Of a DNA stretch of 64,000 nt, positions 640 through 54,110 are shown in pieces. The position numbers and the translations under genes were made by a program. The DNA lies in IMG/VR virus record IMGVR_UViG_3300049048_000052, positions 1-64,000 of that record; one strand, given 5' to 3'. How positions within the stretch are numbered: position 1 is the stretch's first letter; each line of letters opens with the position of its first letter. The notes beneath the pieces were generated by a model. That model was not told the origin of the DNA. It ran no database searches and worked only from the letters and a program-made list of their open reading frames with translations.

Positions 640-877
640 CTAGTTGTTAACGTAGAGGCTCTTTATCCTCTACTTCTCATAGTTTCCTATGAGTCCAGAC
701 TATATCATAGTAACCTAATGGTTACCGCCCCCGCTCGTGCCAACTTATCCTGTTCTAGGTATTGTTGGTAGTCGTTGAACCTTACTCCCATCCCGGAGAG
801 TCTTGGCTGCTGATTGCCATATCTATGTAGACTTAGGGTCCCAGCAGTTCAAGGGCTTTATACAGAGCCTTAACTTA
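640..877 (-). mobile_element. Group I intron (no internal ORF) in tail tube gene
   Basis: Minus strand has P (GAACTGCTGGGA), Q (AATCAGCAGCC), R (GTTCAACGACTA) and S (GATATAGTC) elements in order. Exon 1 ends in U and pairs with the guide GCTCTGTA (U.G at the splice site). The intron ends in G, and its removal restores the frame. Confidence 0.92.
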
Positions 878-937
878 ACCCTGTAGTGGATCGATACCCA
901 CGTTGTTGACCGGAGCCTTATACAGGTCTAAAGCCAT
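878..937 (-). CDS. Tail tube protein, exon 1 (MALDLYKAPVNNVGIDPLQG)
   Basis: ATG at 937 after AAGGAA SD-like sequence; 20 codons, then an in-frame TAA inside the intron. Confidence 0.85.
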
Positions 938-1031
938 TTTAAATGTTCCTTTTAATAAAGTTAACTATTATATACCAGGGGTATTAGGTATTAGTGTAGA
1001 TAGAACTAGACCTATAACTCTAAATCAATAA

Positions 1032-14136: not shown

Positions 14137-15629
14137 GCAGTCTCTTTAGACTTAGTAGGCCTGGACTTAGACTTAGCTTTAGGGGCAGCACTAACTGGCT
14201 TAGCCGTAGCCGCCTCTTTGATCTTTTTAATATTGGCCTTATCTGCAGCTGTCATTTCCCTTTGAGGTGCAGAGATGATATCTCTATAGTATTGATAATC
14301 TACTTCCTCTTCTAGGTTGAGGCCACCAACTGCTTCTGCTTGGGTTAACACACCTGAGATAGTGGCGACATCAGAGTATCTAAAGGGCTTAGCCGTTATA
14401 GTACCTGAGTCATAAGCTGAGAAGTTATCTCTAGCATCAAAGTTATACTGAATAAGTTGAGCTACGCACTGCTCTAGGAATGAATTGATAACTACCTCAA
14501 AGATAGAGTCAACAAACATATGGAACAGTTCTACTTGTCTTTCAGAGGCGCCCCCAGTACCTAGTCCTTGACTACCATCCTTCATAATGAGGTTGGGTAT
14601 GCTCATACCTCTCATCATATTCTCATCGCACAACTCAATAGCCTGTTGGAATGAGTCAGCGAAGTTATTACCAGTGGTAAGTGCTTCTAGTTTAACCGGG
14701 TGGTCCTTATCTATCTGAGTGAATACAATACCTGTCTCACTCCTCATGTTCTCTAGCTCACGGGCGGCCATCTCGTGTAGAGTGAGATACCTAGTGGTAC
14801 CGTCTAGGTCCTGCATTATCTCATCTGTATTCTGAGGAGGTACTACAGCCCATATAAGAGGCGTACCATATCTATCTAGTGCTATGGCCATCATATCTCT
14901 GAAGGCCTCCTTGAATAGATGATACTTAAGGATGGGAACAAGCACAGAGGTACCGTAAGGGTTATTACCCTCACCACCCAATGAGCAATGGATAACTTTA
15001 GACTTGGGTAGTCTAACCATAGAACCTGTAAAGTTAGGACCTACAGGCCTCTCCTTTGTATAGTAAAGAGGCACAGGTACCCACACACCAGTCAAGTAAT
15101 TGGATGTAGGGATAGCCTCGCCATGGGTTAACCTACCATGTAGATTAAGTTTAAGATCTACTTGACTAGGATGATAACTAATAACGTCCTCTATCCATGT
15201 TTGGTCTATACCATTAGGTCCCTTCTTCTTACCCCATATAATCTCTTGTGTAGAGAAGCCTGACCAGAGACAGTTAACTGTGGCATCATATATCCACTTA
15301 CTAACTCCCTTTAGATTAGCCTGTACAAACTTAGTTATATTCTTATCTGTATGAGAATACTTACCGATCTTAGCTTTAACGGATAGGGCTATCTTACGTA
15401 TCCCATCAAAGATGATAGGCTCGCTGCGTCTAGCATTATCCCAAGCTGCTAACTGATAATAGTGGGGTTTAACTACTGGAGTGAAATATTCACCAGTAGA
15501 GTTATATGCTGTAGCACGTCCCATCTGTCCGAACTCTGCAGGCCTTTTTCTATAGAGGGCTGAGGTTCTTATTGGAGGGGACGTGCTAATGTCTGATGTC
15601 TTTCCCAGGGTTGGGTGTAGGTCTACCAT
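14133..15629 (-). CDS. Portal protein (Mu gp29 / DUF935-like)
   Basis: LPKSKVIH..NPYGTSVL..KYHLFK..MAIALDRYGTP portal signature. Confidence 0.85.
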   Translation of the reverse strand: MVDLHPTLGKTSDISTSPPIRTSALYRKRPAEFGQMGRATAYNSTGEYFTPVVKPHYYQLAAWDNARRSEPIIFDGIRKIALSVKAKIGKYSHTDKNITKFVQANLKGVSKWIYDATVNCLWSGFSTQEIIWGKKKGPNGIDQTWIEDVISYHPSQVDLKLNLHGRLTHGEAIPTSNYLTGVWVPVPLYYTKERPVGPNFTGSMVRLPKSKVIHCSLGGEGNNPYGTSVLVPILKYHLFKEAFRDMMAIALDRYGTPLIWAVVPPQNTDEIMQDLDGTTRYLTLHEMAARELENMRSETGIVFTQIDKDHPVKLEALTTGNNFADSFQQAIELCDENMMRGMSIPNLIMKDGSQGLGTGGASERQVELFHMFVDSIFEVVINSFLEQCVAQLIQYNFDARDNFSAYDSGTITAKPFRYSDVATISGVLTQAEAVGGLNLEEEVDYQYYRDIISAPQREMTAADKANIKKIKEAATAKPVSAAPKAKSKSRPTKSKETA

Positions 15630-30826: not shown

Positions 30827-31241
30827 AAGATTAAGTGTCTTATATAAAAGGTTTATACTTATTAGATAATATGGATAGAGGGGTATATGTTGGGCCCTTC
30901 TAGCTTCATATTACTGTAAAAATTATATGGTATTTTTATAGATCGTTATTGAGAGGTTTTCTCTATTGGTATAGCCAATAGGGATATAAGGTTTAGCTCT
31001 TGTTTATCTAGGGTAAGTCTTATGTATACCTGAGCTTCTAAAAAGGGGAATTTTTGTTAGGATTCTCTTAGGTATTATGTGGGGGTAGGTACTCCCCCCT
31101 GGGGGGTCGGCCTGATTCATTTATTAGGATAGAGGAATTCGATGGATTCCTTGTATATCCTGATTAATGATTGGGTCAGCATATGAGTAATGGGTCCTCA
31201 CGGGCCCTTTACTTGTAGTGTAACCCTAGGAGGGTACGAAC

Positions 31242-41818: not shown

Positions 41819-44800
41819 ATGTCTGCTATTGACTTCTCTCGTTTGACCGTGCCCGCTACTGCTAGCCAGGAACAGATCAGTGACCTGATCGATTGTCTGG
41901 GTGAGTTAGGTTACCAGGTGGTACCTGGACCTGACTTTAGAGTGGATGCGTCTGATGTCTTTATGCCCTTTAAGGGTGTGGAGACGGATGACGTAGCCTT
42001 GCTGGCTTACGCTCTAAGTACAGTGCTCAGCGGTCTCGGTATTGGTCTGCCTGAAACGGCAGCTGATGAATACGAGGCTGCCGCTGATGTTGATGGCCTG
42101 GTCCAGTATGTCCGGGCTATGTTCGATAACCCTAGTCAAGAGGAAACAATGGAAGAAGTCATTGAAGTTCAGGATCCAACTCCCTCCGTTAAGGTTGTTG
42201 GTTCTACTAAGGAAAACTTGCTCCCTCCAATTGTGTGGGAGAATCGCCCCATCGCTGAGATGAATGATATCATCTGTCGCTCTATGGGCACCAACTGGGA
42301 TAAACCTCTACCTTCTTGGGTACGCCTTGCTACTGCCTTTACGCATATTGGCCGTACTATTCTACCTACTGAATGGTTAGAAGGGGGCCGTATCGACCGC
42401 AGTCATAACTATGTCCGTACTGATGGCCGTTCCATTCTGAAGGCTATGTACAAGTTGGGTGTACCTCTCGTTGGTACCTCTACCAAGGTTAAGTTCTCTG
42501 AAGGTCAACCCATTGAGACTGTGGAACCCTGCCGTTTCAATGTTACCTTCACCACTCGGGATAACACCTACTTCGTTATCCCTGAGATTGAATCTGTTGT
42601 GGATGAAATGCCTCCACTCTTTGATGCAGAGCGTATGTCTCATGGCATGGTTAATTATGTCCATGAGGTAGTAAGTGCACTGGATGATGAGACCCTCCTG
42701 CAATTCTGGGCTAAGTTCATTCCTAACTCTAGTCTCAATGGTCGTGAGCTCACCTTCAGCCCTAGCGGTGTCTCTCAATACACCAATGTAATTGTTCGCT
42801 TGCCTGAGGCTGAGGACGAGCTGATTAGTGTTAGTACTGGTCGCACTCGCTATGTCAATCCTGTAATGGATGTTAGTGGTATTGTTGTATCTGGCCGCAC
42901 CATCCTGACCATGATGCTCATGAGTCTCGTAAATGAGGCCGAGTATTTGATTACTCAATCACGTGTAGATGGATACCTGAACCTGCTCTCTAATATGTGG
43001 GTACCCGCTGAGAATTATGGGGCCTTCAAGAAGAGTGGTGAGGCCATCCATAAAATCTACAACAATAGGGAGCTCCCAGTGGGCATGTATTGCACTCTGG
43101 GTATCCGTTATCCCTTCATTCACTTAGTGAATGTTAGTGCTGCCGCTAATAACGGTATCACTTCCTCTCGTCATATGGTAGAGGAATTCATCAAGAAGGG
43201 TATTGCTGCACTGCCTCACAAATATGGCACCTTTGGCAAGGCTGTCGTATTTGGTGCAGGGGTAAACGCCATGGGTATGGCGATCGCCCGTAATGAATAT
43301 GGCAACTATGTTGTCAATAACCTGGAGACTGATGAAGCATGGCAGCGCATGATCATGCGTACTGTCCTGGATGCATCTAAGCCTTCCAAGTTCTTCAACC
43401 GTCCCTGGACGTTCTTTGGTTCTGTCTTTGCTGATGGTACTGAGGACTTCCCGCTTGAGAAGTCTAAGCTCCATATGATGACCTATCATCCTGTGGATAA
43501 GGAAGGTACCGAGTTTATCAATGAGGCGGTCTATGTTCGCGGTGTGCGTCGTAAGATCTGTTATACCAATAGCCTCCTGACTCATGGCTCTGGTGTTGCT
43601 TCTGTTAACCCCAGCCGCCAAGCCATCCGTTATTCCGTTGGTAAGTCTGAGGCTGATATGATTAATGATTACAGCATCCCTCCTACATTCCGTAAGGTAT
43701 TTGAGAAGGATGCTGAGACTCGTAATGGGGCAGGTATGAACTCTGACTGGCTGCAGATTGTAGCTGAGAAGCTTCAAGAGAAGGCTGATCGTATTGTCGA
43801 TGAGGCCAAGGCCACCGGTAAGGTATTTCATGATGGGGATGTCGTAATGACTCTCTTTGCTGATCTGCCTGATTATAAGCGTGATCTGGTTGTGGTTACT
43901 GCACCTAACCAGGATATCTATCTGGAACGTGCTGAAGTAGTACGTGTGGCAACTACTAATGCTGTACGTGTGCGCTTCTTTACTCGCTTTGAGGGTGAGG
44001 ATTATATCCTTAAGCTGCGGGGTCCCGGTGTTAAGTTCACTACTCAGTTGGATGATATCACTTTCCTGAGTGGTTTCAGTGATTGGGATCTGTTCCTCAA
44101 CATGGAGTGCACTAAGGGCGAACTCGCTCAACTGTACATGTATGCTGAGGCCGTCGGTGAATGTATCTACTATCCTGATACCGGTTTATTGGAGCATGTT
44201 GCTACTGGTAAGGTAGAAGATTTGAAGGATGTTGGCGCTCCTTTCTACAAGTGGGTTGCAGACAATACCGCTAAGGAGGTTATTGAGCGTAAGGTATCCA
44301 AGGAGTACTTGGAATACATTGCCGAATGCCATCCTGGTCTGGTTGCCTTTACTGAGGACGATGTTACCAATAAGTCTGATATTGTTGTCAAGGCTGATCT
44401 GGGTCATGACTATCTTGTCCATGAGACCATCCAATGTCTTGTGGGTGATATGCTCTTCATGGTGGAGATCTCCACTCCTCGTGAGAATACTAGCCCTGCT
44501 GGTCTTACTCTGGAGCAGCTTGCCCTACTCGAGGGTGTCTATGCTGACTTGGCACTGGCATTCATTCACCTGTCTAAGGAGTTCCACTCCGGTATCCAAG
44601 GTATGGCTAAGCTGATCTTGGGTAAGTTGCCCTCTCAGGATCAAGTACCCTACCTTAACCTCATTGAGGCTGGGGATGTAGTAAACCGCGTCTCCCGGAC
44701 CGATAAGGGTATCCTCATGGGACGTCGCCTGATGCAGGCGCTTAAGAAGGAGTTTCCTAAGGGCTTTGTGCTCTTCAGCACTGACAGCTTTGGAGTCTAC

Positions 44801-46660
44801 TATGACTTTGATTCCATGTCCCGCTTTATGGCATTCTCTGGTGAGAGTGGTGCCTCTGGGGCTGCTGCTGATATCTCTCAGCTCTTTCATCAACTGGGTA
44901 TGCCTGCTGATAAGCGTTCTGCTCGTTACTGGCCTGCATCTATCCATGCACTTAACGTCAGTGCTCAGAATCTGATCACCGCTTGGGTTACCCAGATGGG
45001 TGGTGAGGAAGGTAAGGGCAGCAAGGTGCTCTCCCGTTTAGGCCGTACTGCTAAGATTGGCAGCAACCTGAAAGTTAAGACTGTCCATGTTATGGGGGGT
45101 GTTAGCGAAGGTAAGTTCATCACTCGTCCTGCTTATATGCAGGGACTTCCTGTGATGGGCTTGAATCCTAATTGTGCCAGTGTTAAGCGTCTGGGTATTA
45201 AGGCGGGTGATGTAGTCATGGCGGGTCGTACTCCTATGGGCTTCCCTGTCTTCTGCTATGCAGACGTACATCCTTGCTATGCTATTGCACATGGTTACCT
45301 CTTGGCTAACGTCTGGGCCTGGTGTAACGAGGGTGACGGTGATGGTGATCCTATGGCTATCTTCAATGTGACTGGTATCATTACTGAGGATAATCAGTGG
45401 CGTTACAATCGTAAGATTGAGCTGCGTGAGCTGAGCATCAAGGCGGCTGAGTCTGGTGACTTTACCAAGGCTAAGTCTTTAAGCACTCAAGCTGAATCTA
45501 TCAAGGCTCTGCCTCTGCCTACCTATGAGAAGATGGCTGCCCTGAATAAGGGTTATCTCTCTCTCGGTGGTTATGCTGCTATCTATGGTAGCCCTCGTAA
45601 GCATCCCTTTGCTGAGTTCTGTTCTCCTGCTGATAAGTGGTCTAAGAAGCTGCTTAATCTGGATGTGGATAAGATGATGCCTGGGCATTATCCTGCTGAC
45701 GAGAAGGCAATGAAGAAGGCTACTCGTAAGTCTCTGATCACTGATATCCCTGTGATGGACTATCTCAATGCCAATGATGCAGTAGCTAATCACTATCGTA
45801 TCAATGTTGGTATTGGCTACGGGGTTGCCTCTGCTCTGGCATTCCTGTTGGCGGATCGTCGTCGTAAGGCTATCATTGAAGCCAGTAAGAAGGCTATTGC
45901 TGAGGGCCATGATGTAGAGATCTACAATGGCGGTATGCAGCTGTATATTAATAGCGATGAGGCTGATAACTTCATCCGTCTTCAACTGGCTAAGAATGAG
46001 GAGCTGGTTAACCTTACCCGTGGTACGGTATTGGCCTGGCGTATGCTGTATGAAGGCTATGGTCTGGCTGGTGTCTCTGATGAGGCAACCATGGCATTCC
46101 GTATCCTCGATGTAGCGGCTCGTTCTAATGACCGGCGTATTGCTGTAGTTACTGTGGATGGTCAACCGCGCGTTGAGTATCCTAACTTCAAGCCTGAAGC
46201 AGGTACTGTGGCTACTCAGCCTGTGCTGAAGAATGGGGCTGCCTATCTAACTAGCTTCATCTTTGAGAAGTCTCCTGAGCTCCGTCATTCTATGCTCGGT
46301 GGGGTGAATGAGCTTATTCGTGCTCGCTCTCTGACGGTAGCCATCCGCGACATGGAACGTGGTCGTGAGCCTCGTACTATGCGCCATACCACCTTTTCTG
46401 ATGTGGTAATTGCAGGTGCGTCACGTCGTCTGGGTCAGGGTCAGTTTGGTGTGCAAGAGCAGACCGACTTCTCTGATGAGGGGGACAATGAAGCACACTC
46501 CATGTTTGAGCTGTTGGAAGGTATCCGTTGTGCTAATGGTGGTGCTTATCCCGTTCATAGCAACGTGGTTAAGTACTATCTGAGTATTGGTGCCTCCATC
46601 ATGTACAGCATGGAGATGCACGCTAAGACCAAGCGTGCTGAGATGAATCAGGGCTACTAA
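41819..46660 (+). CDS. Single-subunit two-barrel RNA polymerase (YonO/crAss-like, non-virion)
   Basis: GRTP (R1137), then CNEGDGDGDPMAIF (D1173-D1177) matching beta' RxP..NADFDGDQMAVH; K732..K739 in LKLRGPGVKF resembles the beta lysine pair. Confidence 0.85.
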   Translation: MSAIDFSRLTVPATASQEQISDLIDCLGELGYQVVPGPDFRVDASDVFMPFKGVETDDVALLAYALSTVLSGLGIGLPETAADEYEAAADVDGLVQYVRAMFDNPSQEETMEEVIEVQDPTPSVKVVGSTKENLLPPIVWENRPIAEMNDIICRSMGTNWDKPLPSWVRLATAFTHIGRTILPTEWLEGGRIDRSHNYVRTDGRSILKAMYKLGVPLVGTSTKVKFSEGQPIETVEPCRFNVTFTTRDNTYFVIPEIESVVDEMPPLFDAERMSHGMVNYVHEVVSALDDETLLQFWAKFIPNSSLNGRELTFSPSGVSQYTNVIVRLPEAEDELISVSTGRTRYVNPVMDVSGIVVSGRTILTMMLMSLVNEAEYLITQSRVDGYLNLLSNMWVPAENYGAFKKSGEAIHKIYNNRELPVGMYCTLGIRYPFIHLVNVSAAANNGITSSRHMVEEFIKKGIAALPHKYGTFGKAVVFGAGVNAMGMAIARNEYGNYVVNNLETDEAWQRMIMRTVLDASKPSKFFNRPWTFFGSVFADGTEDFPLEKSKLHMMTYHPVDKEGTEFINEAVYVRGVRRKICYTNSLLTHGSGVASVNPSRQAIRYSVGKSEADMINDYSIPPTFRKVFEKDAETRNGAGMNSDWLQIVAEKLQEKADRIVDEAKATGKVFHDGDVVMTLFADLPDYKRDLVVVTAPNQDIYLERAEVVRVATTNAVRVRFFTRFEGEDYILKLRGPGVKFTTQLDDITFLSGFSDWDLFLNMECTKGELAQLYMYAEAVGECIYYPDTGLLEHVATGKVEDLKDVGAPFYKWVADNTAKEVIERKVSKEYLEYIAECHPGLVAFTEDDVTNKSDIVVKADLGHDYLVHETIQCLVGDMLFMVEISTPRENTSPAGLTLEQLALLEGVYADLALAFIHLSKEFHSGIQGMAKLILGKLPSQDQVPYLNLIEAGDVVNRVSRTDKGILMGRRLMQALKKEFPKGFVLFSTDSFGVYYDFDSMSRFMAFSGESGASGAAADISQLFHQLGMPADKRSARYWPASIHALNVSAQNLITAWVTQMGGEEGKGSKVLSRLGRTAKIGSNLKVKTVHVMGGVSEGKFITRPAYMQGLPVMGLNPNCASVKRLGIKAGDVVMAGRTPMGFPVFCYADVHPCYAIAHGYLLANVWAWCNEGDGDGDPMAIFNVTGIITEDNQWRYNRKIELRELSIKAAESGDFTKAKSLSTQAESIKALPLPTYEKMAALNKGYLSLGGYAAIYGSPRKHPFAEFCSPADKWSKKLLNLDVDKMMPGHYPADEKAMKKATRKSLITDIPVMDYLNANDAVANHYRINVGIGYGVASALAFLLADRRRKAIIEASKKAIAEGHDVEIYNGGMQLYINSDEADNFIRLQLAKNEELVNLTRGTVLAWRMLYEGYGLAGVSDEATMAFRILDVAARSNDRRIAVVTVDGQPRVEYPNFKPEAGTVATQPVLKNGAAYLTSFIFEKSPELRHSMLGGVNELIRARSLTVAIRDMERGREPRTMRHTTFSDVVIAGASRRLGQGQFGVQEQTDFSDEGDNEAHSMFELLEGIRCANGGAYPVHSNVVKYYLSIGASIMYSMEMHAKTKRAEMNQGY

Positions 46661-48809: not shown

Positions 48810-49262
48810 TTGAATCTCCAGGGCTCAGCGGACATTAGATCTGTGGGAGCCCTTTCATATTTGTATAATAGCCCTGTCTCTGTTAAGGCAGGGCTATTCA
48901 TTTCATTATATTTGATCGTTATGTTAAATCTGATTGATAAACTCCAAGAGATTGATACCACCCAGGATAGGATGGATATCTTAAGGAGAGGTGCATTCTG
49001 GGTCCATTGGGCCAATAGTCTTAGTCTTGGTGAAACCGAGATAGTCACTATGATCATCGAGGGAGCGCAGGAAGAGGGTGTGGATATCCACAGGTACCTT
49101 ATTGAACATCCTGAACTCATTGATGAACAGAGGGACTCCTTCCTTATTAATGGAACACCAGGGATGGTGCCCATGCATGAGGTAGAGAAGATTGCTATAG
49201 AACACTTCGTAGTGAAGAGTCTATACAGAAGGTATCTTGATTACTTATATAGTAAAAGTTAG
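48810..49262 (+). CDS. Hypothetical protein (true start probably downstream)
   Basis: The 5' part overlaps a hairpin. Confidence 0.5.
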   Translation: MNLQGSADIRSVGALSYLYNSPVSVKAGLFISLYLIVMLNLIDKLQEIDTTQDRMDILRRGAFWVHWANSLSLGETEIVTMIIEGAQEEGVDIHRYLIEHPELIDEQRDSFLINGTPGMVPMHEVEKIAIEHFVVKSLYRRYLDYLYSKS

Positions 49263-49317
49263 AGATAATGGGGACCCTATGGTCCCCTATTCCATCTTCG
49301 TTAACCTAGGAGGGTTT

Positions 49318-50211
49318 ATGCCAAGATCCAAGAGCAGTGTTCAAAAAGCTAGCAGATCTAAAGTTGCCACAGAGAAGCACAATATTCTCTTTGGTAAGCC
49401 GCATAAGTATAAGCCGATATTCGTGGGTTTGGAGCGTAGGCTTATCAATGGCGTGGAATGTATGGTGGGATATCATGAGTCTGCTACTGGTAGACTTGTG
49501 TTGAACTACTGGGCAGTACATGCGGATCGAGGTATGAGGATGGAGCCTGGTTGGATTCCCTTACCTAATAAGGATGCCCGATGGTCTGACTTGAAGTATG
49601 AAGGGCGTACAAGGGTGCTACTGCAGATTGAACAATGGAAGACTGAGGGTGTGATAGAACCAGAAGAATGGTCTGATGGTCAATCTACAGTAGTCAGACG
49701 TGAGAAGGATGCCAGCGATAGAATTACCATCTGGGATCCCGCTGTTATGGTAGCTCTAGATAGTAGAGATCTATTGAATGAGTTCATCAAAAGCTGCAGC
49801 ATGTGTACCCTGGTAGAGGGAGCATATCTTATCTTTGCCGATTGGATGACTCAGAAGCAATTGAAAGAGTTTGATCTTAGAAGGATGTCCTGGCTGAAGG
49901 ATAACATGGACGGGATCAAAGAGGGCGTCTTTAGGTTTGCAGAGCAGTGTGCCTCTTATGTGGCAGAGGAAGGATATGGGGATAAGATCGTAGCCTCAGT
50001 AAGGGATACCTTTGCTGAGTACTTCCTTAGTCAACTGGAGACTTATCACTTACCTTATATTGAACCAAGTCTTGAAGAAGAAGGGTTCAATCAGGATGTG
50101 AAGAGTATCCTGCAAACTAAAGGACTGGATTACTTTGCTAGGTACTATCCAACCACTCTACACTTAGGCCCAGATATGACTCATATAGATTGTTCATCTA
50201 TGTACAAGTAG
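49318..50211 (+). CDS. Hypothetical protein
   Basis: ATG after CCTAGGAGGG. Confidence 0.65.
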   Translation: MPRSKSSVQKASRSKVATEKHNILFGKPHKYKPIFVGLERRLINGVECMVGYHESATGRLVLNYWAVHADRGMRMEPGWIPLPNKDARWSDLKYEGRTRVLLQIEQWKTEGVIEPEEWSDGQSTVVRREKDASDRITIWDPAVMVALDSRDLLNEFIKSCSMCTLVEGAYLIFADWMTQKQLKEFDLRRMSWLKDNMDGIKEGVFRFAEQCASYVAEEGYGDKIVASVRDTFAEYFLSQLETYHLPYIEPSLEEEGFNQDVKSILQTKGLDYFARYYPTTLHLGPDMTHIDCSSMYK

Positions 50212-50257
50212 TATCTCCCAACCGTCCCTTCTATTAATGGAGGGCGGCCTGAGGGAT

Positions 50258-50460
50258 ACAAGGGGAATGAATACTCTACGGAGGAAGTACCCTATATCCA
50301 CTGCTGGTAGACCAGGTATAGTCTACAAGGGATAAGGTGCGTATGGCACTAGCTATTATGTATAGCACTCTACGGAGGGTGCCGTAGGTAAGGTCCTGAT
50401 TCCCGCCAACTAACCATTGATACCTATGCTAGGTGGTTAGGGTAATGAGCATAGGAAAGG
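50258..50460 (+). ncRNA. Candidate structured RNA with H-type pseudoknot upstream of tRNA-like gene
   Basis: Two cTACGg tetraloop hairpins; 8-bp stems 50409-16/50432-39 and 50422-29/50447-54 cross. Confidence 0.55.
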
Positions 50461-50462
50461 TA

Positions 50463-50548
50463 GCAACCACGGTCCAAACGGTAGGGACACTTAGGGAGGT
50501 ACTATGTACTGACTCTAGGAGATCTGGGTTCGATTCCCAGTGGTTGCA
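50463..50548 (+). tRNA. tRNA-like gene with 20-nt expanded anticodon loop
   Basis: GCAACCA/TGGTTGC acceptor, GTCC/GGAC D stem, CTGGG-TTCGATT-CCCAG T arm; anticodon not assignable. Confidence 0.7.
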
Positions 50549-50569
50549 TTATTAAACCTAGGAGGGTTT

Positions 50570-50791
50570 ATGACATATCAGTTCAAGGATGTTCATGGTG
50601 GGGACATTGCACGTATTGGGTGCTTCAAGGGTTTGAAGCAGGTTGGTTACTACCGTCAGACTGTACTAGGTGATAAACCTTGGGTCGCAGTGTTGTACGG
50701 TCCCATAAGTAACCAATTCTCAGATAGTCAGGACTTCCTTACTGAGGAGGAAGCTCAGAATTGGTTGAAGGAACGGTCTAAGTATTACTAG
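50570..50791 (+). CDS. Hypothetical protein
   Basis: ATG after CCTAGGAGGG. Confidence 0.6.
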   Translation: MTYQFKDVHGGDIARIGCFKGLKQVGYYRQTVLGDKPWVAVLYGPISNQFSDSQDFLTEEEAQNWLKERSKYY

Positions 50792-50857
50792 GAGAGGGTA
50801 GATATTAGTTAGTATCTCCCAACTCTCCCTCTCTTAGTAGAGGGGAGCCTGGGGTAT

Positions 50858-50929
50858 ACAGGATTAGTTCAGTGTTAGCAGAACATCCCCTCTAAAGGGA
50901 CAAGATAGGTTCAATTCCTATGTTCTGTT
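50858..50929 (+). tRNA. tRNA with CUA (amber) anticodon, atypical
   Basis: TCCC-CTCTAAA-GGGA anticodon arm (4 bp), ATAGG-TTCAATT-CCTAT T arm; D loop lacks GG. Confidence 0.65.
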
Positions 50930-50940
50930 ATACCCTACTC

Positions 50941-51009
50941 ACAGACCTAACTCAAGTGGAAGAGTACCCACATTGTCGGGTAGTATGGGTTCGAATCCCA
51001 TGGTCTATA
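50941..51009 (+). tRNA. Degenerate tRNA-like gene
   Basis: ACTC/GAGT D arm and ATGGG-TTCGAAT-CCCAT T arm intact; anticodon arm irregular. Confidence 0.6.
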
Positions 51010-51042
51010 ATTGTCCACTTAAATTGATTAAAGGAGTCTGTC

Positions 51043-51501
51043 ATGGTTACTACTCAAGAATTAGAGGCCGCAGGAGTGCAGGTTCACACTGCAGAGGCTA
51101 AAGTCCTCAATACCTGCCCTCATAATATCAACATCTTCCCTGAAGATGCCTTCATTAACCTGAAGCAGATCAACCCAACAACCTGGGTGGCCGATGGGGT
51201 TAAGGAAGAAGCACCGCTGTTGGCTTTCTATCCTTCAAGTGGTTCCAGTCTGCGCATTGGAGTAGAGTCCAAACCTATCGGCTCCATTGCTGGTGTTCCC
51301 TGTTACCGGGCAGTATATGGTGAGCTCTCTGGTCTCCCTGAGGAAGAGTATGACGTGATTATCACATCTCTTCCTGCGGTCAGCAATGCTAAGCTCAAGG
51401 GTCTGGCGATCGCTGAGAAGCTATGCTCACCTCATCAAGTGGTGCGTCTCTCAACTGATACCAGTGTCATCCTCGGCTGTACTGGGTTACAGTTCCAGTA
51501 A
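51043..51501 (+). CDS. Conserved-looking phage protein (NTCPHNINI..GLP..VR..ILGCTGL)
   Basis: AGGAG SD; the pattern recalls a widespread uncharacterised phage family. Confidence 0.65.
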   Translation: MVTTQELEAAGVQVHTAEAKVLNTCPHNINIFPEDAFINLKQINPTTWVADGVKEEAPLLAFYPSSGSSLRIGVESKPIGSIAGVPCYRAVYGELSGLPEEEYDVIITSLPAVSNAKLKGLAIAEKLCSPHQVVRLSTDTSVILGCTGLQFQ

Positions 51502-51519
51502 TTAGCCCTTAAGTGGGTA

Positions 51520-51591
51520 GCAGATATAGCTCAAAGGTAGAGCATATGGACGTTTGTTCATAAGATGTAGGTTCGACCCCTACTATCTGCT
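51520..51591 (+). tRNA. tRNA-like gene with 8-nt anticodon loop (Asn GTT-derived?)
   Basis: GCAGATA/TATCTGC acceptor, GCTC-AAAGGTA-GAGC D arm, loop ACGTTTGT, GTAGG-TTCGACC-CCTAC T arm. Confidence 0.7.
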
Positions 51592-51623
51592 TTGTTAAAC
51601 ATATTGATTGAAGGGAGTCCGTT

Positions 51624-51941
51624 ATGAAGGTTGATTGTTTACCTGGGTTCACATTAAGGGATGCTGTAGCTGGAGAGGATCAGTCCTTTAGCGTAGAGCA
51701 AGCTATGAAGGTGCTACATCCTCGTATATTTGAGCTATTGGTACAGAGTGTAGAACACACAAGGAAGAGGGCCCTGGAGAATGAGGTGAACTGGGCAGGC
51801 CTAAGCCCGTATGTGAGAGTGGAGATGCTTAAGGGTTTCCTTGCCTCACGTATCTCTGTCCTATTAGATATGGGAGTGGATCCTAGTGGGGCCCTGCCTA
51901 TCATCTGCTTCGTTGTGGCCTGGGTTGAGGATGTGGAGTAA
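51624..51941 (+). CDS. Hypothetical protein
   Basis: GGGAG SD. Confidence 0.6.
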   Translation: MKVDCLPGFTLRDAVAGEDQSFSVEQAMKVLHPRIFELLVQSVEHTRKRALENEVNWAGLSPYVRVEMLKGFLASRISVLLDMGVDPSGALPIICFVVAWVEDVE

Positions 51942-53432: not shown

Positions 53433-53980
53433 TAGACTGATAGGGAGGAACGGGCCTTGAGCCAACGTATTCCTATTAGTTGAGGGTGGTAAGGACCCTA
53501 CGATGGTTCTTATTGCTCAAGCCTAGGTCGTAGTGACGTACTTCCTAGCTAGGCCCAGTAAAGTTTGCTAGGTTTGATAAATGGGTCGAAGTACAAACCT
53601 AACTGCAGGGATATGCCGCCCTGTTAGTCTTTGACGGGGGAAACCCGCATTGAGTAGTACAACCAAGTAGGGAGCACCACCCCCTAGGAGGAATAGGCAA
53701 GGTATACGTCTGCTCATATCTATTGTGGTGATAGGTATGGGCGCATGGTCCCTACGTTAAGGGGTACCACTCTCTTGATGAAGAGACGTTTCCTAGTTCG
53801 TAAACTAGGTGGTGGAGTGCCTTCCGTGGGGACGCTGTTCTCATTGGCTAGTGCCCCTCAGGTCTACTATGGGAAACCATAGGGTAGCTATAACCTTGAC
53901 GATACTCGAAAGAGTTGGGGCAGGGCTATGGACTTATTAGCTACAAGTACAGAGGGGAAGGGGTCATAGCCTTCCCCTAT
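53433..53980 (+). ncRNA. Candidate large structured ncRNA (about 550 nt) downstream of tRNA
   Basis: ORF-free, GC-richer; about a dozen hairpins including GAAA-capped stems and a terminal AGGGGAAGG/CCTTCCCCT stem. Confidence 0.65.
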
Positions 53981-54110
53981 AATTAAAACTTATAAATAAT
54001 TAGAAAGTCTTTGTCTTGACCCTATAGGAAAAAGTTGCCTTTATCTCTTAAATGAGGTAAATCATAGGTAACTATACCTAATAAATGAGCTCCATCAATA
54101 AGTAGAGCTT

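Follow-up and report, generated by a model that had tools for sequence, protein, structure and literature searches.

The IMG/VR record is a virus of 251,780 bp (~252 kb) that CheckV rates as complete, and the window analyzed here is its first 64 kb. Its gene content and origin indicate that the phage is a jumbo cyanophage without close relatives from a soil metagenome, because its protein counterparts are found only in cyanophages, it carries a cyanobacterial-type tmRNA and the sequencing runs that hold it are soil metagenomes. A 1613-aa ORF (41819-46660) and the ORF at 51043-51501 have counterparts of 25-33% identity in cyanophages alone: the group around Microcystis phage Ma-LMM01 and phages of Cylindrospermopsis. 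The tmRNA is permuted, lies apart from the locus at genome 132326-132562 directly after a tRNA-Met, and scores 43.1 bits with cyano_tmRNA (E 1e-9) and 45 bits with tmRNA_permuted, both under the gathering scores; ARAGORN reads its tag as ATNNIVPFSRVSSIVV. Only two sequencing runs hold the region, both of them DNA from soil metagenomes, one probably that from which the record derives, and neither with variants, and the read search returned assembled DNA contigs only, identical to the window. An alternative genetic code was ruled out: the standard code is in use, TAG terminates 67 of 197 long ORFs, and both ORFs flanking the locus end in TAG. This standard-code phage with many TAG-ended ORFs also encodes a tRNA with the anticodon CUA at 50858-50929 (+), which is of the amber-suppressor type and is labeled Pyl by ARAGORN.

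Long ORFs take up ~88% of the genome, and the ~23 tRNA-type genes found by ARAGORN and Rfam combined all lie on the + strand. The locus is a gap of 358 nt (50212-50569) between a 324-aa ORF (49237-50211) and a 73-aa ORF, and it holds no ORF >40 aa. Its region has a G+C content of 47-54%, against 42.6% for the genome. Neither a promoter nor an intrinsic terminator was found when the gap was searched, and no function could be assigned to the flanking proteins from Pfam, PHROGs or the ESM Atlas. The features of the locus are collected in Table 1.

Table 1. Features at and around the gap 50212-50569
Feature	Position	Strand	Description
Boundary hairpin	50209-50262	+	Begins on the TAG stop of ORF 49237-50211; 17 pairs, bulged T
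Leader 5' third	50262-50328	+	First cUACGg hairpin; mutually exclusive short stems at 50292-50326
Three-way-junction domain	50329-50404	+	Closing stem; 9-bp stem 50342-50350/50378-50386; hairpin 50352-50366; second cUACGg hairpin
Candidate H-type pseudoknot	50410-50455	+	S1 50410-50417/50433-50440; S2 50423-50430/50448-50455
Linker	50456-50462	+	7 nt from S2 to the tRNA-like element; predicted RNase P leader
tRNA-shaped element	50463-50548	+	86 nt; RF00005 40.6 bits, cut-off 29, E 9e-7 locally; acceptor stem 50463-50469/50541-50547; D arm 50472-50488; anticodon stem 50490-50494/50515-50519 (5 bp); T arm 50524-50540
20-nt "anticodon loop"	50495-50514	+	Replaces the 7-nt loop; 7-bp + 5-bp hairpin, UAU triloop
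Spacer	50549-50572	+	Ribosome-binding site 50560-50565; start codon 50570 of the 73-aa ORF 50570-50791
Boundary hairpin, second copy	50810-50863	+	Also begins on a TAG stop codon

The gap opens with an irregular hairpin that runs 52 nt past the stop codon and folds at -23.8 kcal/mol (z -2.6). Exactly two copies exist in the whole genome. The last bases of the second copy are the first bases of tRNA(CUA), and that tRNA occupies the position at which, in the first copy, the 200-nt RNA starts. Between the copies, two neighboring pairs carry compensatory changes and a third pair is altered on one side only, and the helix is kept. Because of these compensatory changes, the hairpin appears to be selected as a helix and to mark the transition from ORF to RNA gene. 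By analogy with the second copy, an RNA gene would start near 50258-50262, which matches the start given in the initial annotation of this DNA. The hairpin is not followed by a U-run, and the promoter search was empty; we predict a processing or stabilizing site.

The two C-TACG-G (UNCG) hairpins that the initial annotation placed in the following 200 nt are present, as exact copies of the 12-mer ACTCTACGGAGG at 50273-50284 and 50367-50378. The 12-mer has no further occurrence in the 251.8-kb genome, and its repetition 94 bp apart is beyond chance (an estimated 0.001 or so per 200-nt stretch). The annotation had also listed further short stems, and here the leader divides in two. The three-way-junction domain is well folded and beyond chance, at -33.4 kcal/mol with z -3.0 and none of 200 shuffles as good, and its minimum free energy structure makes up 67% of the ensemble, so that one fold dominates. 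The 5' third, by comparison, is indistinguishable from shuffles (z -0.1). Taken whole, the 200-nt leader reaches only z -0.6 to -1.6, a low rank among the ORF-free gaps of this phage, some of which stand at z -6 to -7. Its predicted fold is also not unique, since duplicated segments give alternative pairings: TACAAGGG is present twice, with a single partner for both copies, and the 5' strand of S2 can likewise be claimed by either of two similar segments. Decayed tRNA remnants within the 200 nt were considered and rejected, as the stretch has no tRNA-model match and no T-loop motif.

Mutually exclusive helices of this kind could belong to a cis-acting 5' UTR of the 73-aa ORF, in which alternative pairings and the tRNA-like fold control translation or stability. 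In favor of such a leader, 11 nt lie between the tRNA-like element and the ribosome-binding site, and three GGAGG motifs are present. However, no riboswitch or leader family of Rfam matched, neither a terminator nor a helix sequestering the ribosome-binding site was found, and a complete tRNA fold would be cut off the mRNA by RNase P and RNase Z. We regard a cis-acting leader as quite improbable.

The leader ends in a candidate H-type pseudoknot with loops of 5, 2 and 7 nt. The initial annotation had described it as perfect, with two 8-bp stems, and as ending 8 nt before the tRNA-like fold. Both stems are there and the two elements do adjoin, but S1 includes one G-U among its eight pairs, against eight Watson-Crick pairs in S2, so "perfect" slightly overstates the case, and we count 7 nt between them. 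Taken singly, the stems each contribute -8 to -10 kcal/mol, and the 5' strand of S2 can pair instead with 50383-50390. Equally good compact H-type candidates number 15 in the genome (2 x 251.8 kb strands), or about 1 per 34 kb strand, which gives an expectation of 0.006 in 200 nt and of ~4 per 64-kb window. The pseudoknot is thus only weakly beyond chance. Because ~4 of its kind are expected in a window of this length, it is a reasonable candidate by position, not by statistics.

A compact double-stem pseudoknot that adjoins a tRNA-shaped gene in a phage raises the question whether the adjacent tRNA-like RNA is processed by a ribozyme that cleaves itself, be it a theta/HDV-like variant or one of a new class; UNCG-capped helices are, moreover, typical of structured RNAs. 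The initial annotation had proposed a novel ribozyme or a tRNA mimic, and had noted that the layout fits neither theta ribozymes nor tmRNA well. The latter remark is correct, as the defining features of both are missing. The tRNA mimic is supported in a narrow sense, as a full tRNA body that is very unlikely to decode, and the ribozyme has no support. Theta ribozymes (PMC10879173) resemble the element here in being small, pseudoknotted and adjacent to a phage tRNA gene, and the interleaving of S1 and S2 resembles that of P1 and P2. However, a theta ribozyme is located on the 3' side of its tRNA and cleaves no more than 5 nt from the end of that tRNA (PMC10879173), whereas the pseudoknot here lies 5' of the element, and directly 3' of the tRNA-like gene is a ribosome-binding site and an ORF, with no theta-type cleavage-site layout. 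Just 2 nt separate the S2 5' strand from the S1 3' strand, at the place of P3/L3, and 7 nt separate the two 3' strands, at the place of P4 and J4/2; because of these intervals there is no room for P3/L3, P4 or J4/2. Counterparts of P1.1 and of the catalytic C of J4/2 are likewise missing, as is the nested double pseudoknot, and S1 begins with C, where HDV-like ribozymes have G1. At E<=10, Rfam yielded no ribozyme family, the HDV type included, and RNase P already explains 5' maturation. We rejected a theta/HDV-like ribozyme, and self-cleavage of any class is highly improbable here.

Rfam was searched over the whole window at the gathering level and over 50150-51700 at E<=10. This comparison, which the initial annotation had itself suggested, matched tRNA as the sole family at the locus, and no other family fitted at 50150-51700. 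Plastid-ycf2, mascRNA, CRISPR-DR17, SgrS and other weak matches were dismissed as echoes of the tRNA shape or noise.

The tRNA fold itself is clearly above chance, and the 20-nt anticodon loop that had been reported in it is real. Standard pairs occupy 21 of 21 stem positions and all four stems are intact. The element shares with a canonical tRNA (RF00005) the cloverleaf with its 7-bp acceptor stem, 4-bp D stem, 5-bp anticodon stem and 5-bp T stem, as well as G18G19, the signature bases of the T loop (TTCGA) and the discriminator A (50548). It encodes no CCA, nor does any other tRNA of the phage, and its U-rich 3' trailer starts with TT, as do those of most other phage tRNAs. It differs from a canonical tRNA in that the 7-nt anticodon loop is replaced by 20 nt refolded as a hairpin, the U33/R37 frame is gone and position 8 is C. 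ARAGORN called no tRNA at 50463-50548.

The extra loop bases lengthen the anticodon stem to 7 bp and then form a 5-bp helix, and the resulting arm (50488-50521) folds at -12.0 kcal/mol with z -2.6 and makes up 85% of the ensemble. The loop includes GGAGG followed by ATG-TAC-TGA and holds a near-tandem GTACT..GTACT duplication. We looked for specific pairing between the loop and the upstream leader and found none. Because enumeration shows that removal of any contiguous 13 nt never yields a loop in which position 33 is U and position 37 a purine, decoding by the tRNA-shaped element in its present form is very unlikely.

An intron-containing tRNA was rejected. The insert is 13 nt, Intron_gpI is unmatched at the locus, and the phage genome has no splicing endonuclease (PF01974 above the cut-off) and no RtcB; a CCA-adding enzyme was not found in it either. 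The window contains a group I intron at 676-968 (-), with a full-length model match of 71.8 bits. The phage also has two RNA ligase genes of family PF09414, both outside the window, at genome 84342-84863 and 188585-189046, the second ~170 nt downstream of a tRNA-Met (188342-188415).

Other tRNA genes of this phage are odd as well. Those at 50941-51009, 51520-51591 (+) and genome 135062-135134 have anticodon loops of 6 or 8 nt, and the one at genome 135140-135211 has A at position 33, all with sound stems. The bodies of these four score 37-57 bits, their loops are centered on TT or carry A33, and ARAGORN could not name the anticodon for three of the four. A fifth gene, at genome 112396-112567 outside the window (38.7 bits), has a ~100-nt insert in the variable region that forms a long hairpin; its stems are sound and its anticodon arm is normal, with the loop CTCTCAG and the anticodon CTC. 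The defects are thus concentrated in the anticodon loop or the variable region, with the stems intact, a pattern that looks like selection for shape rather than decay.

These genes bear on a further alternative, in which the element is a tRNA-shaped decoy for a host anticodon nuclease or tRNA-modifying enzyme, or an unconventional tRNA that decodes after loop bases are removed. The phage has at least five tRNA genes with abnormal anticodon loops or inserts on sound stems. To our knowledge, no decoy of this tRNA-shaped kind has been described, and nothing here ties the element to a nuclease. For an unconventional tRNA, the 7-bp extended stem is of interest, since enumeration indicates that removal of 9 nt could leave U33, the anticodon ACU and G37, and one of the two RNA ligase genes sits right beside a tRNA. 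Against it stand the missing splicing endonuclease and RtcB, the size of the insert, which at 13 nt is far below that of a group I intron, and the failure of every contiguous 13-nt removal to give U33 with R37. We judge a decoy or an unconventional tRNA unlikely. Phage tRNAs have been proposed to evade anticodon nucleases through changes in the loop (PMC10264068), a proposal that would favor a role of this kind and that the odd loops seen here may fit. Sound-bodied tRNAs with abnormal anticodon loops bear in general on the idea that host anticodon nucleases shape phage tRNAs.

We searched widely for relatives. With blastn, a 3-kb query, the 205-nt leader and the tRNA-like element were compared with 50,697 phage records, and T-arm matches were all that emerged. 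Scans of IMG/VR with the upstream ORF, ORF 51043-51501, the 1613-aa ORF, the pseudoknot 31-mer, the hairpin pattern and the D-arm 19-mer returned no relevant relatives; ten loci with the two-hairpin pattern were all pentapeptide-repeat genes or tandem repeats and were set aside. None of 185,579 genomes contained a 21-mer taken from the tRNA 3' half, and its occurrences in JGI metagenomes were discounted as an ordinary tRNA-Lys(UUU) on two contigs and, on a third, a T-arm/acceptor fragment without a complete tRNA. Pattern searches found no homologue of the 200-nt RNA in INPHARED, IMG/VR, the JGI metagenomes or the 185,579 genomes. A covariance model of 50329-50462 matched only itself in the phage and three cyanophage genomes. 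In a word search of 5.8 billion proteins, three flanking ORFs matched only themselves, and exhaustive HMMER found one weak relative of the upstream ORF, on a 2.3-kb contig without the RNA gap. Ma-LMM01 and Cr-LKS4 have no RNA genes at the corresponding place. A T-arm match in Planktothrix phage PaV-LD (HQ683709, about 14795-14851) was rejected as a homologue: it is an unannotated fragment resembling a tRNA 3' half, with a T arm and acceptor 3' strand very like those of the element and no recognizable 5' half, and could be a tRNA fragment or an attachment-site remnant.

Compensatory changes are consequently confined to the two pairs of the boundary hairpin, seen against its paralogue. The leader and the tRNA-shaped element are a single sequence, from which novelty as an RNA class cannot be shown.

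Such a locus could also arise if a tRNA gene was recently disabled by a 13-nt insertion or duplication in its anticodon loop and lies beside spacer or regulatory DNA, with the pseudoknot a coincidence and the upstream 200 nt either non-functional or active as DNA, for instance as repeats that bind protein. The near-tandem duplication in the loop speaks for this. The weak z of the whole leader, the chance frequency of comparable pseudoknots (~1 per 34 kb strand) and the failure of any relative to show conservation also agree with it, and the 12-mer repeat, together with other short direct repeats, might be DNA sites or duplication scars. However, a disabled gene does not readily explain why all 21 stem pairs and the signature bases of the T and D loops are intact, why the flanks resemble those of working tRNAs, or why the inserted loop is a stable, well-determined hairpin. 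Nor does it account for a junction domain that folds far above shuffles, for a structure-conserved boundary hairpin that elsewhere leads into a tRNA, or for the upkeep of 358 non-coding nt where long ORFs make up ~88% of the genome. A disabled tRNA is somewhat unlikely in itself, yet nearly as likely as the reading that we prefer.

That reading, which we hold tentatively and would call possible rather than probable, is that 50212-50569 is a small RNA operon in the tRNA region of the phage, in which the tRNA-shaped module serves as a processing handle for RNase P and RNase Z. The boundary hairpin just past the upstream ORF would mark the start of the RNA genes. Next would come an RNA of ~200 nt, which contains a solid three-way junction and probably ends in the pseudoknot, and then the tRNA-shaped module, retained for its shape as a punctuation mark. 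If the gap is transcribed, RNase P, cutting at 50462/50463, would give the upstream RNA its 3' end, and the pseudoknot 7 nt away could cap or protect this new end. RNase Z would cut after 50548 and so release the downstream mRNA, whose leader would measure 11 nt up to the ribosome-binding site. Either product might then have a function, conceivably that of a decoy for anticodon nucleases or tRNA enzymes.

For RNase P and RNase Z, the acceptor stem, the T arm and the flanks are sufficient. The module keeps what they read, including the acceptor stem, the T arm, the contacts between the D and T loops, the discriminator A and the U-rich trailer. A role as a processing handle is suggested because these features are intact and the anticodon loop is lost. 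The RNA operon is further favored by the tRNA score of 40.6 bits, the stable hairpin of the anticodon arm (z -2.6) and the tRNA-like 3' flank; by the odd tRNAs of this phage, whose defects spare the stems; by a boundary hairpin that occurs only twice, each time leading from a stop codon into an RNA gene, with two compensatory pairs; by the junction at z -3.0, the exact 12-mer duplication, the lack of any ORF >40 aa and the raised G+C; and by the precedent of structured RNAs beside phage tRNAs, such as GOLLD and ROOL (PMC5737381). Against it, the sequence is single and no homologues were found, hence there is no covariation. The whole leader folds little better than shuffles, ~4 pseudoknots of this kind are expected per window, and the duplicated segments give a non-unique fold. 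A very recent insertion in a tRNA gene would also leave the stems intact.

In our view, the tRNA-like element is a robust and unusual object, and the "pseudoknotted RNA" of the initial annotation is partly supported, by way of the junction and the hairpin boundary. The region is best described as a phage tRNA-like gene with a putative co-transcribed structured RNA. If the processing handle is real, then phages use tRNA-shaped punctuation to make and stabilize other non-coding RNAs, and the many tRNA genes of large phages that are listed as "pseudo" or "undetermined" would gain a function. As one unreplicated sequence, the locus has value as a lead, not as a finding.

The closest known systems can be set beside the locus. 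tmRNA also combines a tRNA-like part with pseudoknots and is encoded among phage tRNAs. In contrast to tmRNA, however, the acceptor stem here is closed locally, full D and anticodon arms are present and the pseudoknot lies outside the tRNA-like part; neither ARAGORN nor Rfam called a tmRNA at the locus, position 3-70 is A-U and not G-U, and a tmRNA was rejected. The stable small RNAs species 1 and 2 of the phage T4 tRNA cluster provide a likeness of another sort, as non-tRNA stable RNAs that are co-transcribed and co-processed with phage tRNAs.

The mascRNA and MEN-beta modules of MALAT1 and NEAT1 (RF01684) serve as a working analogy only, in that a non-decoding tRNA-like fold follows a compact structure. 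In MALAT1 and NEAT1, a cut by RNase P at the tRNA-like fold gives the longer RNA its protected 3' end. A phage counterpart of MALAT1/mascRNA would be an RNA of ~200 nt whose 3' end is made by RNase P at a non-decoding tRNA handle and is protected by a pseudoknot, with the freed tRNA-shape perhaps acting as a decoy; we put this forward as a speculative and rather unlikely version of the RNA operon. MALAT1 and NEAT1 are eukaryotic nuclear lncRNAs with a triple helix, whereas here the structure is a candidate H-type pseudoknot and the cleavage is predicted. The element is not a member of RF01684, with which it scores 16.9 bits (cut-off 42.5, E 3.3), a score that reflects the T arm and acceptor stem only.

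GOLLD and ROOL are structured non-coding RNAs often found near tRNAs in phages and prophages (PMC5737381). They differ from the RNA proposed here in their 580-800 nt and many junctions (PMC5737381), and neither model matched at the locus. Several other ORF-free gaps of this phage fold strongly. The gap at 30911-31229 (+), 319 nt long, consists of very stable hairpins in series (z -6.0 to -6.8) and looks like stacked terminators or processing sites. Outside the window, the gaps at genome 78826-79379, 101774-102161 and 145966-146154 reach z -4.8 to -7.6. Directly 3' of a tRNA-Phe lies an ORF-free gap of 678 nt, 53433-54110 (+), with no ORF >49 aa and no Rfam family at E<=1 or blastn relative. 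It folds at -250.6 kcal/mol, compared with -207.7 for shuffles (z -5.7 to -6.7), better on the + strand than on the - strand, and contains several GNRA-capped helices. We regard this gap as a candidate for a large structured RNA adjacent to a tRNA, as is known from ROOL and GOLLD. It is a closer size analogue of these RNAs than the region 50258-50548, and the stronger lead in the window.
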